DNA of 63,973 nucleotides, filler included, from Reticulomyxa filosa (Eukaryota; Protista; Foraminifera): the NCBI GenBank assembly GCA_000512085.1. It is 14 parts of 14 records of this genome, joined end to end, with 100 filler letters (N's around TTAATTAATTAA, not from the genome) between each part and the next. Parts side by side here need not be neighbours in the genome. Positions count along the whole stretch, not along the records: positions 1 to 7,593 come from ASPP01005373.1; 13 more parts are not named here. One strand, written 5' to 3'. Made by a program: the position numbers and the translations under genes. Under the pieces are notes generated by a model that ran no database searches, had not been told where the DNA came from, and saw only the letters and a list, made by a program, of their open reading frames with translations. Every line of letters begins with the position of its first letter. The first letter of the stretch is position 1. Shown in pieces: positions 1 through 7,593 of the stretch.

Positions 1-44
1 AAAAAAAAAGAAAAAAAACAGCACACGATAGCGATGACGAAAGT

Positions 45-3000
45 ATGAGTGAAGAAGAAAATATGTGGGATAAATTGGAGGATATGCAGGAAATAAACAA
101 AGAAATCGAGGAAATAAAAGACGTGGAGCCACCTCGAAACCAAGAAAATGAAGACTTTGTCGTAGTTGAACAAGAACAGGAAGAGAAAAAAACAGAGGCA
201 GTGGTAGTGGAGGAAATTAAATTCCAGGTGACAGAAGTGTATGCAATATTGTGGTCCCATGAGGACTTGCTTTGTGGTTTTGTGGATGTATTATCGGTCG
301 TGTATGACCATTCAAAAAGAGACTTGGAAAATATGAATAACGTTTGGAAGGAGAAACTATCGTTACATGAACATGTAGCGAAAATACTCGCAATTGTGTT
401 GGACGTTGTGGAAAGGTCATTGGAAATTACATTAGTTGAAAACATGAAACGTAAAGTGGATCATTTGTCATCGATTTCACAAGCCTTTGAATACGTTGTG
501 CAGTGGTTGAACCAAGGATATCCCAACAAAGACTTGATAAAAGATTTGAATCGACGATGGGATTTGTTGAAGCTGTCAATGCTATGTATCACTGCTACCA
601 AGTATCAAACCAGAAATGGTGTACTCACTCGTTCGATTAAAGAGCGCTTTGCCAATTGTCAGTTTGACAATGTCGATTCCTTAAACGCATTATCGGCCCT
701 TGTTCAGAATTCATTGAATCAAGATCGCGTGGAAGGAAATGAAGTTAATGAGGTATTGCAATGGCTCGCTCAAAACTATGTTGGTGTATTTGGCTTAAAG
801 ACTGCCGCTAGTTATCATCACGAAATTGCACACACGATCTCTAATGACTTTGCCGAAAAGTTAATTCAATGGATTGGAGGAAGATCTGATACATTGCCAT
901 TCGCCCCAACTTCTTTCACAAAGATGGAGATCGGCTCACAATTGATTTCAATTATACGAAAAAAAGTTTGGAGCTTCTTCCTTTTTTTTTTTTTTGTGGG
1001 GGTTTAGTATAAACAAATAAATTATTTGTCTTTTTTTTAAAATAAAAAAAAAAAAAAAAAAAGGAACATCAAAATGTTCGTAATCTTTTGATGCAATATT
1101 TACAAGCATGTAACTTGAACAACGAATTTGCAGTGCTGTTAGTTCGAGTGCAAGAACACTTTTTACACTTCCGCGAAATGGTGCATCGCAAACGACTAGA
1201 ACAAGAAGATCGGCCCGATGTGCAAAAATTTACTCGATTATCAGAAACACTGAAAGAGAAAGTGAAAAATAGGAGTCTGTTGGATATACTGTTGATCATT
1301 GCGGATTGCAAAATGTGGACGTATTATCTGTCGCATTATATAAATCGAACCATGACCATTTCGTATGCGTATGGAGACGAAGGAATAAAATACTTTTGGC
1401 TGGAAGGCAAAGAAAAACGTACGCGCATGTATTTGTCTGCACAAGATTGTGCCAAAATTGGACAGCTGTACAGATGCGATCAAAATGGAATAACTGAAAT
1501 GGAGAGACAGATACGTCAAGGCTTAAAATATTACCTTATGGTTGAACTATGGAAGAGAAAAGGTTCCACTGCTGCTTTGCATTTGAATGATAAAAAATTC
1601 AAGAACTTGTTTGGATTCGCGGTAGGAATGAATAACAATCAGCAACAGAGTGGTCGTATCAAAAATATACCTTCCAATGATATCTTTCAATTATTGGAGC
1701 ATTGTGATAATCAAAGATTGGACAGTGCCTTCAAAGAAATGCACTCCGCTTTTACAAAGGCCTTCATTTCCAATCAAATTGATTGGCAAAACTTTGATCG
1801 AAAGCGCTTTATACATTTCGTTGCTGGTTAATACACAAACAAACTCTATTTTTAAAAAAAAGATTATTATTTCATGTTTGTTTGAATTAAATAATAATAA
1901 CAGGCATATTTACGGAATTATATTTGAAAATGACACAAACCATTTCGAGACTATAACGAAATTCACAAGAAATATCAGTAGACATTTCAATGATCATTTG
2001 CAGGGTACACAATCTACACGATGTCATGACCGAATAGATTTTATTCTCACAGTTTTGTATGGTGTTCTCATAAAATAAATTAGTCAAAATGCAAATGGGA
2101 CAAATATATGATAGATTGGCAATTGGTGATTCGGAGTGCTCACTATTCAAAAATCAAAATGGTAATGCAACATTAGAGCACGTGCAAATATATCGGTTGG
2201 CTTGGCATTTGATTGGAGTGGTCTTATCTTTGCCACAATCACCTTTGAGTATTTTATTCCACAACCCAATGGCCTATGCTAATCAATATCTGTTGGCAAT
2301 GCCGGAAGATCAGAGTGCCTCGTTACTTAGGGCGATGGCTGGATCTGGAGCCTGGTTATGTCCCAACAATCATCTGTACTTTGTAACCGATTGCACAGCA
2401 ACAAACGAAAGCGCAAAGTGTCCGACCTGTGGAGATGCTATTGGAAATGAAGCTGGCAAAGGATTTCACAACGCTGCGAAAGGGAACCGTCGAATCGGTG
2501 TAGTGCAAGATGATGGCACAATTTACCCTGATAAAAACGGTGCAACACAAGGAATGGAAGAATATCGGCCGGAACTAATGGCTCCACAAGGATACGTTAT
2601 ACTGGAGGGTGCTGTCGACGACAAATGCAGAAGATTCAATGAAACGTCTATTCGAATCGCACGATTGTTTGTCAATCTGATTTTGCTGATTCATCACACA
2701 AATGCTGAAAGATCCGATTGTTTACAGTTATGATTTCAAAAAAATTTTATTGTGTTGAAATAATTTAATTAATTAACAAAACAAACAACAAACAAAATCA
2801 CTAAAAATTAAAAGATTTACGAAATTGGGTAAAAGCAATACTGAAGTGATGAATAAACTGTTTAAGATTGTCCAACGCTATTTAGAAAAAATTGCAACAA
2901 TGATTGGAGAATCATTCGAAGGCACCCTATTGTTATTACACTACATGATCCATTGCATCTATATGAAATTCGAGACGCGTTTCCCCAATGGGTTTTTAGA

Positions 3001-5159
3001 TCTGTCGCTCCAAGGACGTCAAAATTTTGAAAAGTATTTACTTGAAGAGTGCATTGACCCAGTTATCCAAAATAAAGACGTTATGATTCGATTGGTGCGA
3101 GCACAAACTGTATCCCAAGAAGAGTGTCGATATTGGGGAAAGCGAGTGGAAGAAGATATGAAACCCGATAGTGACGAATTCAAACAATTCCGAGAAACTT
3201 ACCTCCCTAATGTATACCTGCCATATCGAATTGTCACACTCACCGAATTCCGACATTTCGTATTCCAAAGCCCTTCCAATGAAAAGAAATATCCAGTCAT
3301 TTGGGGTATATTAAAGACAATCTCTTCTGCCAGTGGGTTTTCGACATTTGCATTGCAATATTTACCAGCAATGATCCAATGGATGAAATTAGTCCATTCG
3401 CGGTTCAATTGTCGTTTGACGCAAGAAGAGGTGGAAGAACGACCACAAGAGTTTTCGGCAGAATATGCACTTCAAAAACAGTGGGGGGAGAAAACCAAAT
3501 TTGATGACACATGGAAAAGCTTTGTGCAAGGTTGGAACCATGTTGCTAGTCGCATCACCACCGACCACCAAAAATCCGGATCCCGAATCCGCGGATCTGG
3601 ACAAGAGCCAGCGGAGAATGAACAAAAAGAAGAGGAAAAGAAAGGAGATGATGAAAAGTATGAAAAGAGAAATAACAATAATACCCAAGTGCTTGATGTC
3701 GGCACTGACGAATATAAAAGATATTTAGTTCTTGCTGATGCCCTCAATCAATGTGAAAATATATCATTTCAGTGCATTAAAGCAAACAATCCAAATGATG
3801 AGCTGTCCGCCAAAGAGGTTCCATTGTGGATGGCGATTGATTGTGGAAGCACTGGACCGTTGGCAACTAGTAAAATGATTCGTTTGTTATTGGAACATTT
3901 GGTTACTGTCAACAATAATTGTTTATTCAGCTGTCATCAGTTCAGTATTTATTTATGTATATTTGTGTAATGATCTTATGTTTTAGATGGAATTTAAAAT
4001 TAAACGTTACAAATATCTAAGATTGAATGCTACTGAAGAAAATGCACTTGCAACACATACCTTGGGAGAAATTTTGCTAACTCATATTTCCAGTGAAAAG
4101 GATGTCGTTGGAATTGATGAGACTAAATTCTTACAGTTTGTATTCTTTTTTTTTTTTTAAGAGTATATATGCGTATGTAATGTTTGATTGATTTTGCATT
4201 TTAAAAAAAAAAAAGAGAAATACAAGAATGCACCAGCCAAAAGTTTGAATATGGGACAAATGTACCATTTGCTGTGAATTTGAGATTATTAGAAAGCCGA
4301 ATGAAAGACAATTACATTGTTGGAAGAAAAATAATCAAATTCACATTAAGTGAATTGATGTTTGAATTGGCAGGACAACATGATATTCGACAAGTAATTG
4401 TGCATATAACTGCAAAGTATAATGAAGTAAAAAATACTATTGCTAAACAAGAATATTTCCAACGTGTTGGGCAAGAACTTCTCAAGGATTTAAAATTAGA
4501 GATCGATCAACGTGCGGATATTGCAATTGGTGGAAATATTGCACAAAACACTGGAGGACAAATTGCAAATGCAAATTCAGTAATTGCTTTTAAAGTTGCA
4601 AAACAATGCATTAGAGCAAGTCTTGATTACATTGCGTCGACAAAAAGACCTTCCAGATAATAATTGTGCTGTTGGTGCCTACATGAAAGATATTTTGCAT
4701 TTACAACAAGCTGAATTCGAACCTTTTGTTCAAGTTCAAGAATTGCGTTTGGCTCATTGTGAGGACCTTTGGAAATATTTGGAGAGATTGCATTTGTATA
4801 CTGAAAATGTCTGGCACAAAATACCAAGAAAATTAATGAACTTGTATCAAACAAAAGTACCTGCTCCTTTGAAGCCTGTTTTGCAAAATTTTGTAGTTGA
4901 AAGTGATTTAAATTTAATGTGGGAATTGCTGATACAATGGAAGCAATTTTTAGAAACTAAATTGAGCCGAGAAACGTATCAAAAAGCATCTTCCGTTCCA
5001 CTCAAAGAGTATTTGGGAACGGCCATGAGTAATGAAAGATTAGAGGAACAAGTACAAAAATTACCAGATAATTTGTTCCTTATACATGCGGGAACTGGTT
5101 ATGAGATTTGTGCTCAAATGTTTCAAGAAAGAGGAATGCCATCAATGAATAATAACTAA
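45..5159 (+). CDS. RNF213-like: RNF213/mysterin-like E3 ubiquitin ligase, C-terminal part (E3 module, RZ zinc finger, CTD); probably 5'-truncated by contig start; multi-exon with apparent homopolymer frameshifts
   Basis: RZ finger C-x3-H-x6-C-x8-C-x2-C (CPNNHLYFVTDCTATNESAKCPTC, 2359-2430) preceded by LAMPED (RNF213 LPTMPED). Downstream blocks YPVIWGIL, LQYLPAMI, FVQGWN, LLEHLVTVNN, AYMKDIL and LAHCEDLWKYL are colinear with the animal RNF213 C-terminus as I recall it. Inferred GT-AG introns 966-1063, 1827-1903, 2057-2114, 2727-2814, 3940-4021, 4136-4215; frameshifts near 1923 and 4643. Confidence 0.85.
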
Positions 5160-5590
5160 AATAAAAACAAAGCAACAACGAAACAAGTTTTTAATTATAG
5201 GTCATAAAACGTGCAAAATGTAATAAGTTTAAAAAACTTTCTTTGTTTCTCGGTTATTTTACATCATTTGTTCACAATAATCAAATTCAATTATTCTCGA
5301 TAGGATATTTTGTTACAAATGATATATTTCAATAAAGTTGCAATTGCATTGAAAGATCAGTTACATTTTTAGAATTCATTTTTGAAAGAGCAAACCAATG
5401 TTAGTGCAATGATGAAAATTACAATTTCAAAAACAAAAAACACCAACCCAAAGCAACAAAAAAACCAAGTTTGTCAATCACCTTGCAAACAAAAAGAATT
5501 TTTTTGTTTTTTAATTGAAATTTTCGGGCGTTTGTTCTTCCAATTTGACAACACAAAATCAAAACAATGGATAGCCAATAACCAAAGCAA

Positions 5591-7480
5591 TCAAACTTTG
5601 AAATTAAGCTTCCTCACTAACTGCCATGACATCTGCCGTTCTTCATTAATAATTAGTGAATTGACTCGTTTTTCCTCGGCACGACAAGTGCGGTCTTTAC
5701 GTTTTCTCGAAATGTTGACATCATAGCCGCCCTGTGTTTTCTTATCAGTCATTTGCAGGGTGGTGTCATAACCATCAGAGTCAATCTCCATATTTTCTTC
5801 CCGCGCTTCATTGTTTTCGTCTTCATTACTTTCTTCTTCCTCCTCTTCTCTTGCATTGTACGATGCCATACGTGCATCTCGACTATCCTCATGTTTATAG
5901 CACTCTTCCTCATGAGAGCTATCACCTTTGGTATTTCTAGCTGGAGGACTTGTACTCATTGATGAATTCTTGCGCTTGGATGTGTCATTGGCACGTTCTC
6001 GCTGAGAGCGATTCACCACCACAGATACTTTCATCTATATCAAAAAAGCAAAGACAAAGTACATCGCGATTATTGTTGATTGAAAGGTTCACGAATGCTA
6101 TGACACACTTCTTTGTCACTTTGGTCATGAGCACCCTTTTGCTGCGATTTTGTTTGAGCGTTTTTGTTTTTTTCCAATTTTATTTTTTCTGTTTTTCCCA
6201 TTTGCGTTTTTTCCTTTTGTTTTGCCTTTGCTTTTGCTTTCGCTTTCGCTTTAGTTAGTTGTTTGTTTTCAGTGTTTGCGCTTGCACTACTTTCCCACGC
6301 CTGTTCATCTATATCCCCACTACTATCACTGTCAGTATCATTTCGATTTGCATTGGAGCGGAGACTTTTGTTAGGACGTGCCGTTTCAGCACGAACGGGG
6401 ACGTGTTTCGCACTGTTTTGATTTGTGCCGTTATGAAGCGCAAAAAGTGGAGCAGACGGATTGACAGAGCAGTGGACTTGGTGGTTTTGGTTGGATGCCG
6501 TTGATCAGTGGCATCATCTGCAGGATTGTCTTGAGCAAGATCATCCCCGGACAAAGTGTTACAACTAGACGAAGAAGATGGGCCAACTCCAGAGCTGTCC
6601 TCGCTTTGCGTGCGCTCTCTGTGTGCCGGGGCACTCAATGTATTGGGTCTTTTGCCCGTTCCACTTGTCCGTTCTTTTTTGCTTTGTCTTTATCTCTCTG
6701 CTTTTTTGTTCTTTCGTCTTTTTTCTCTTTCTCTTCATCTTCATCACTATCTTGATTATTATCGTCATCATTACCGTCATTGTTGTCATTGCCCCCTTCT
6801 TCTTCTTTTTCTTTTTCGTTGTCTTTGTTGTCAACTTTTTTTGGAACACTTCTGTGTGGGAAAATATATAAGGTCAGTGAGTGTGTAAATTGTGCAAGAG
6901 ATGCAAAAGAGTTGGGGGAAAAAAAAAACAAAACAAAAAACAAAGAAGAACACATAACATAAAAAAAGGAAGAAAAACCTATTGACAAGTGAGCTGTCAA
7001 AAGTGGTTCGTTTGGAGCCGCAAGGTTCGATCAAATCAATATCGCGACGAGGTTTATTAAAGGACAAACTACCTGCGTCCTGTTTCTTCCCTTTATTTTC
7101 TTTCTCTTTTTCTTTCTGTTTGTTCTCCAAAGTGTTGGAATATCTTCGCGTAAACAAACTCAACAAAGAGTTGCCTTTGTGGGTCACCGCTGCTTCTTTT
7201 CTTTTTCTCCCTTCTTTTGCTTGGTCTCCTCTCGAAGTAGATGACGAGAGAGTGAACGCGGCAAACAAGAAAACGAGTGAAAGGATTCGACCATGGCATT
7301 GGGAGAAACGTCGAGCGAACAATAATGAGCGACGCACTCTTCCCATGTCAAGTTCGCCTTGCACGATTCGTACGTCATCAACTTTGCATTCTTTGTACTG
7401 CTCAGCGACTTTTTATATCCCGCTTTGCTCAACAAGTGTCGAATCGTTTCCGATTTGCCCCAATCTATCCCAATCATATA
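5591..7480 (-). CDS. Hypothetical low-complexity (K/E/D/S-rich) protein, partial, several frame breaks
   Basis: Chain of minus-strand ORFs (7184-7477, 6831-7364, 6635-7000, 6309-6638, 5591-6034) with charged disordered composition and intron-like interruptions; no recognisable domain. Confidence 0.45.
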
Positions 7481-7534
7481 CTCTTTCTATTACATACTGT
7501 ACACGACCATATTATATACACAAAACAAATATAG

Positions 7535-7593
<59 letters not shown>

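Follow-up and report, generated by a model that had tools for sequence, protein, structure and literature searches.

The window considered here is a stretch of 63,973 nucleotides, filler included, from the foraminiferan Reticulomyxa filosa (GenBank assembly GCA_000512085.1), and the gene of interest was analysed within positions 1-7593 (record ASPP01005373.1). All coordinates are those of the whole stretch. The gene is RNF213-like and lies on the + strand; its seven exons (~1,555 codons) are cut at the 5' end by the start of the window and close with the stop codon TAA at 5157-5159. With high confidence, it is the 3' part of a foraminiferal RNF213-family gene that encodes the C-terminal E3 module, i.e. 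a helical shell, an RZ finger and the RNF213-type C-terminal domain. The gene region is AT-rich (GC 29-43%), and the coding signal jumps among the + frames. The seven-exon model is based on tblastn against paralogues and on phase-consistent GT..AG pairs. Exons were searched singly; across junctions, only short peptides were translated, for splice phase. The exons are as follows.

3-965, + strand: exon A, frame 3, cut at its 5' end; BLASTP match to ETO06491 (P0002) residues 1101-1335, 45% identity, E 4e-59
1064-1826, + strand: exon B, frame 2, the E3-shell-like part before the finger; 47% identity to ETO06491 1353-1607, E 2e-82
1904-2051, + strand: exon C, conserved and frame-broken as assembled; read from DNA alignment, pairwise gaps and piecewise translations
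2115-2726, + strand: exon D, with the MPEDQS motif and the RZ finger (Pfam PF20173); 70-77% identity to R. filosa paralogues
2815-3939, + strand: exon E, N-terminal half of the RNF213-type C-terminal domain; 47% identity to ETO06491 1893-2241, E 2e-112
4022-4135, + strand: exon F, C-terminal domain continued; tblastn match to ETO06491 2239-2269, with GT-AG junctions that give the paralogue's sequence
4216-5159, + strand: exon G, end of the C-terminal domain, with the stop codon; tblastn high-scoring segment pairs in two frames

Exon A begins with an acidic low-complexity stretch followed by a helical region, and it matches no Pfam domain, RING included. The counterpart of exon D in ETO06491 is residues 1672-1872. 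Exon E carries a Lys/Glu-rich low-complexity insert. Exons F and G extend the ETO06491 match as far as residue 2588, and exon G has the terminal motif P..L.L.HAG that is common to RNF213-like proteins.

The RZ finger lies in exon D. The frame +1 translation reads ...YLLAMPEDQSASLLRAMAGSGAWLCPNNHLYFVTDCTATNESAKCPTCGDAIGNEAGKGFHNAAKGNRRIG..., with LAMPED at 2293-2310, and the finger comprises the following.

2359-2469, + strand: core of the RZ finger, C-x3-H-x6-C-x8-C-x2-C-x12-H
2359-2361 (Cys), 2371-2373 (His), 2419-2421 (Cys) and 2428-2430 (Cys), + strand: predicted CHCC zinc ligands
2392-2394, + strand: loop Cys, the putative ubiquitin acceptor, equivalent to C4516 of human and C4462 of mouse RNF213
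2467-2469, + strand: distal His

Coordinates are from the translation and residue roles from mouse RNF213, where the zinc ligands are C4451, H4455, C4471 and C4474, the nucleophile that accepts ubiquitin is C4462 (human C4516) and the candidate general base is H4483 (bioRxiv 10.1101/2021.05.10.443411). Across all six reading frames the motif is found only once, and Pfam assigns it to ZnF_RZ-type, PF20173 (E 9.9e-16, 57.5 bits against a gathering cut-off of 27). In the family alignment, all six key residues are present: the CHCC set, the loop Cys and the distal His. A preliminary description of this DNA, made from the sequence alone, had placed LAMPED, the C-x3-H-x6-C-x8-C-x2-C pattern and a downstream His here, and was correct to the base; its claim that the equivalent of human C4516 is retained also holds, and the profile search bears out the RZ assignment.

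The distal His was said to be displaced by an insertion of about four amino acids, and this proves to be a property of the family. Most RZ fingers in the alignment follow the pattern CxxC-x3-IGG-x2-H-x4-GN, whereas the foraminiferal clade has CxxC-x3-IGN-x6-H-x4-GN; as the spacing from the His to the downstream GN is constant, the four residues have been inserted ahead of the distal His. The insertion is common to all foraminiferal paralogues seen. A pairwise HMMER alignment to human RNF213 had paired a later His, in 'GFH', with the window His; this pairing was discarded because in the family alignment the window His is the conserved distal one, behind the insertion. A diatom-like protein of 4,992 amino acids (P0155) has an insertion of equal length at the same place, possibly a feature shared within SAR (stramenopiles, alveolates and Rhizaria), and a dinoflagellate homologue is without it. 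At the first zinc site, Naegleria and Ambispora have CNCGY, not CPNGH.

Does the similarity to RNF213 extend beyond the finger? The ~830 amino acids that follow it are homologous to the RNF213 C-terminal domain. A foraminiferal profile of the region downstream of the finger, in which the window exons were included as separate rows, aligns by hhalign with a profile of non-foraminiferal homologues (Prob 100, E 1.3e-41, 611 colinear columns), and the non-foraminiferal profile matches the solved RNF213 C-terminal domain (mouse 4517-5137) with E values of 5e-76 to 1e-79. The colinear C-terminal domain of the preliminary description is thus a real one. Before the finger, ~320 amino acids, among them the second half of exon B, match the E3-shell region of non-foraminiferal RNF213-like proteins (hhalign Prob 98.7, E 2.1e-16); the regions upstream of these gave no hhalign alignment to the RNF213 family. 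In direct comparisons with the PDB, exon D matches RNF213 weakly (E 0.033, MPED region included), and exons A, B and E gave no match in single-exon phmmer searches.

ZNFX1-like helicases also have RZ fingers, and some of the weaker matches carry the finger at the extreme C-terminus. Could the window gene then be of ZNFX1 type, or an unrelated protein that shares only the finger? The ~700 amino acids upstream contain no helicase or NFX1 fingers by Pfam, the C-terminal-domain homology follows the finger at length, and the best matches, which would have refuted the preliminary description had they been of ZNFX1 type or unlike the window outside the finger, are giant RNF213-type proteins similar well beyond it: ETO06491 is colinear with all window exons, at 45-70% identity and E values of 4e-59 to 2e-112. 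The paralogues also have the RNF213 AAA+ core. The C-terminal-domain profile matches and the AAA+ core of ETO06491 were taken to rule out a ZNFX1-type identity, and the chance that the gene is anything of this kind is very slight.

The AAA+ core, which the preliminary description had proposed to look for upstream, was found in relatives. ETO06491, itself N-terminally partial, matches at residues 39-246 human RNF213 ~2934-3129 in native numbering (2974-3169 in the tagged 5,247-residue construct), with E 1.8e-18. A relative of 3,510 amino acids (P0011) matches the RNF213 AAA core with E 3.5e-101, and an RNF213-type AAA+ core is present in all giant RZ proteins tested. Taken with its relatives, the window shows that RZ finger, C-terminal domain and AAA+ core go together in Rhizaria.

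Where, then, is the RING from which RNF213 takes its name? In the RNF213 family, it is expected ~450-500 amino acids upstream of the RZ finger, and Pfam detects no RING in exons A-D, i.e. in the ~700 amino acids upstream of the finger. The same pattern is found across the family. Among the AAA+/RZ giants tested (P0108, P0110, P0138, P0155, P0055, P0002 and P0011, compared with the tunicate P0097), only tunicate RNF213 has a Pfam-detectable RING, at the expected distance; Pfam finds none in the 800 amino acids upstream of the finger in foraminiferal, Diphylleia, Naegleria, Ambispora and diatom-like homologues. The RING of RNF213 is dispensable for transthiolation (eLife 2020), and RING-less homologues outside animals are consistent with this. 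The pattern suggests that the route through the RZ finger and C-terminal domain is the ancestral activity of the family; in a protein without a RING, it would be the sole E3 activity.

Closest to the window gene are R. filosa paralogues, at 45-80% amino-acid identity. When the RZ exon was searched exhaustively with HMMER, 183 proteins were returned, of which the best are R. filosa ETO06389 (77% identity), ETO06491 (70%), ETO01107, ETO17034, ETO22337, ETN98040 and ETO23675, followed by the foraminifera Nonionella stella and Bolivina argentea and then by metagenome proteins. The family is multigene in R. filosa, with at least seven other loci besides the window copy. The contig that holds the ETO06389 locus, ASPP01027183.1, has 79% DNA identity to window 1382-3962, introns included, and ETO06389 is also the partner of the window (support 100/99) in a maximum-likelihood tree built from the exon-E region. 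When ASPP01027183.1 38-2581 is set against window 1382-3962, gaps of 12, 1 and 53 bases fall within the exon-E equivalent; all similarity is gone after window 3962, and conserved sequence is left out of the GenBank model ETO06389. This sister copy, too, has a truncated or degenerate look.

Beyond the foraminifera, giant proteins with an AAA core and RZ finger are found in Diphylleia rotans, Naegleria gruberi (D2VJ31), the diatom Odontella, the dinoflagellate Polykrikos, the amoebozoan Clydonella, the glomeromycete Ambispora and tunicates. The lineages with homologues are Rhizaria, stramenopiles, dinoflagellates, Discoba, CRuMs, Amoebozoa and one fungus. The preliminary description placed the gene outside animals, and so it is, with Reticulomyxa, Nonionella and Bolivina as nearest relatives; yet homologues outside animals are spread well beyond the foraminifera, which are not special in this respect.

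RNF213 has been studied as a protein of vertebrate immunity and Moyamoya disease. The literature describes it as a vertebrate protein, 'conserved in all vertebrates' (eLife 2020), which might lead one to ask whether the window gene came from an animal, by contamination or by recent horizontal transfer. This is very improbable. In the exon-E tree, the window falls in a foraminiferal clade with 100/100 support (R. filosa, Nonionella and foraminifera-like metagenome sequences), far from tunicate RNF213; the tunicate protein has the RING that the window gene lacks; the short, AT-rich introns with GTT donors and AG acceptors are common to R. filosa paralogue contigs; and there are the homologues in many other protist lineages. 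The foraminiferal clade is weakly sister to the diatom-like P0155, and the tree tool flags long-branch caveats.

The finger was first described as intact, and this is right for the RZ finger, whereas the assembled gene is broken. Relative to ASPP01027183.1, exon C has one base fewer in the A-run at 1927-1930 (A4 against A5) and two bases fewer near 2036-2040; the segment between both deletions encodes a conserved peptide in another frame, and in the entry frame it is interrupted by two stops. Read piecewise, the exon gives GIFTELYLK, NDTNHFETITKF...HDRI and LFSQ, in agreement with paralogues P0001, P0003 and P0005. In exon G, a single additional base at ~4607 moves the reading from frame 2 to frame 3 (CAA[T]GCA in the window, where homologues have AFKTAK-x-A-[VI]-EQVL). 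Either the window copy has been assembled wrongly, or it is a very recent pseudogene. The latter possibility, that the indels are real and this is a recently dead member of the foraminiferal family from which no functional protein is made, deserves serious consideration, if it is somewhat the weaker of bets: three breaks of frame fall within 4.7 kb of coding sequence, with two entry-frame stops between the exon-C deletions, the sister contig is also gapped and loses similarity after 3962, and the family is multi-copy, with degenerate members. Against this, the homology-guided frames are elsewhere free of stop codons, every catalytic residue is kept, and one of the deletions shortens a homopolymer from A5 to A4, as sequencing error typically does. 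The publicly available R. filosa assembly is a highly fragmented draft. Codon positions also argue against the pseudogene reading. Identity to the paralogue is 69-78% at third positions and 83-91% at first and second positions; third positions diverge most, which indicates purifying selection after the duplication, through most of the gene's history.

Several points weigh against the reading of the window as encoding an RNF213-type E3 module. With indels in exons C (1 + 2 bases) and G, the gene as assembled cannot encode the full protein. The contig ends before the AAA+ part of this copy, so none is visible. The C-terminal-domain profile built from foraminifera only has no direct RNF213 match in the PDB, and the homology is visible only via intermediate sequences. 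Structure speaks neither for nor against: an AlphaFold2 model of exon E is all-helical (predicted local distance difference test, pLDDT, 72; predicted TM-score, pTM, 0.47), and a Foldseek search with it places RNF213 chains at ranks 3 and 11 with non-significant E values of 4-8; an ESM Atlas feature search with the same exon (score 0.76) was uninformative. Several foraminiferal paralogues are without the catalytic Cys, so activity is not universal in the family. The loop Cys (changed to G, S, N or A) or the distal His is lost in P0004, P0005, P0007, P0008, P0011 and P0012, and the family is a mix of putatively active and inactive members. The same losses make the retention of the key residues in the window informative.

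With the CHCC, Cys and His residues and the C-terminal domain all present, the most likely function of the RNF213-family module is that of a RING-independent transthiolating E3, under the control of an upstream AAA+ ring. By analogy with mouse and human RNF213, whose C-terminal domain docks the ubiquitin-charged E2 (bioRxiv 10.1101/2021.05.10.443411), the C-terminal domain encoded here would do the same. The CHCC site of the finger is predicted to hold one zinc ion, and the loop Cys (codon 2392-2394) would receive ubiquitin from the E2 by transthiolation. Ubiquitin would then pass to a substrate, with the distal His (2467-2469) as a possible general base. ATP binding in a dynein-like core of six AAA units, presumably encoded upstream and off the contig, would gate the reaction; ATP binding activates the RNF213 ligase (bioRxiv 10.1101/2021.05.10.443411). 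The tagging of bacteria or lipids by this expanded, fast-diverging family in a bacterivorous protist is plausible. A broader evolutionary proposal can be offered only as speculation, and the odds are rather against it: the machine of AAA+ core, RZ finger and C-terminal domain may be an ancient, originally RING-less pan-eukaryotic transthiolating E3, to which a RING was added later on the animal line, and which foraminifera expanded into catalytic and Cys-less paralogues for cell-autonomous defence, ubiquitylating non-protein targets, e.g. the lipopolysaccharide of ingested or invading bacteria.

What is notable is the RING-less variant architecture and its family-wide pattern, more than the damaged and truncated window copy. 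In the literature searched, no paper was found that links RNF213 to Reticulomyxa or Naegleria, nor one that discusses non-animal AAA+/RZ giants; GenBank and UniProt already list the homologues publicly, as hypothetical proteins or as 'RZ-type domain-containing' ones. The family could supply simpler, RING-free proteins for mechanistic work and could be used to test whether bacteria or lipid ubiquitylation predates animals.

The introns of the window gene, all on the + strand, are GT-AG, and their junction peptides match the paralogues.

966-1063, + strand: intron 1, donor GTTTGG
1827-1903, + strand: intron 2, donor GTTAAT
2052-2114, + strand: intron 3, donor GTTTTG
2727-2814, + strand: intron 4, donor GTTATG
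3940-4021, + strand: intron 5, donor GTTCAG
4136-4215, + strand: intron 6, donor GTTTGT

The six are short (63-98 nt), with a GC of 16-27%, and in pairwise DNA comparison with the paralogue their identity is lower than that of the exons. All six donors begin with GTT, as against the usual GTA or GTG, and several introns have A-rich tracts just before the terminal AG; the GTT donors and A-rich 3' ends may be a foraminiferal splice-site peculiarity. Intron 1 contains, at 975-1062, a T-run of ~14 followed by an A-run of ~19, and such homopolymers make assembly and sequencing errors likely in the R. filosa genome. An intron of 257 nt at 1827-2083, and donors at 2057 or 2062, were entertained and dropped once the paralogues showed exon C to be real. 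By paralogue comparison, the MQMGQIYDRL stretch of the long open reading frame 2074-2730 is intronic.

The region 3' of the gene (5160-7593) has low-complexity open reading frames, Lys/Glu-rich and Phe/Leu-rich, on both strands, for which no credible protein family was found. The AT skew reverses from ~5500, and a TA-rich, microsatellite-like tract (IYIYIY) begins at ~7540.

How does the window gene compare with known systems? Its nearest counterparts, ETO06389.1 (UniProt X6LXS4, 'RZ-type domain-containing protein') and ETO06491.1, belong to the same family and have the same exon structure, but they are separate loci and the window has frame-breaking indels of its own. The C-terminal domain is complete in the window, whereas the ETO06389 locus loses similarity after exon E. 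ZNFX1, a superfamily 1 helicase, has in common with the window a finger of family PF20173 and its conserved catalytic Cys; it differs in its helicase core, its NFX1 fingers and the position of its RZ finger at the extreme C-terminus, none of which the window has, and in lacking the RNF213 C-terminal domain that follows the finger here. The closest known system is RNF213/mysterin of human and mouse (PDB 6tax, 7oik, 8s24 and 9i1j). Shared with it are the CHCC finger with its loop Cys and distal His, the MPED motif ahead of the finger, a C-terminal domain of ~620-800 amino acids colinear to the very end (the P..L.L.HA motif) and, as seen in the window's paralogues, a dynein-like AAA+ core upstream. 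The differences are the four extra residues ahead of the distal His, IGN where RNF213 has IGG, the Lys/Glu-rich insert within the C-terminal domain, pairwise similarity that is directly detectable in the finger exon only, and a RING that RNF213 has and that is absent from the 700 amino acids before the finger in the window gene. The gene is also multi-copy in the R. filosa genome, and single or double in vertebrates.

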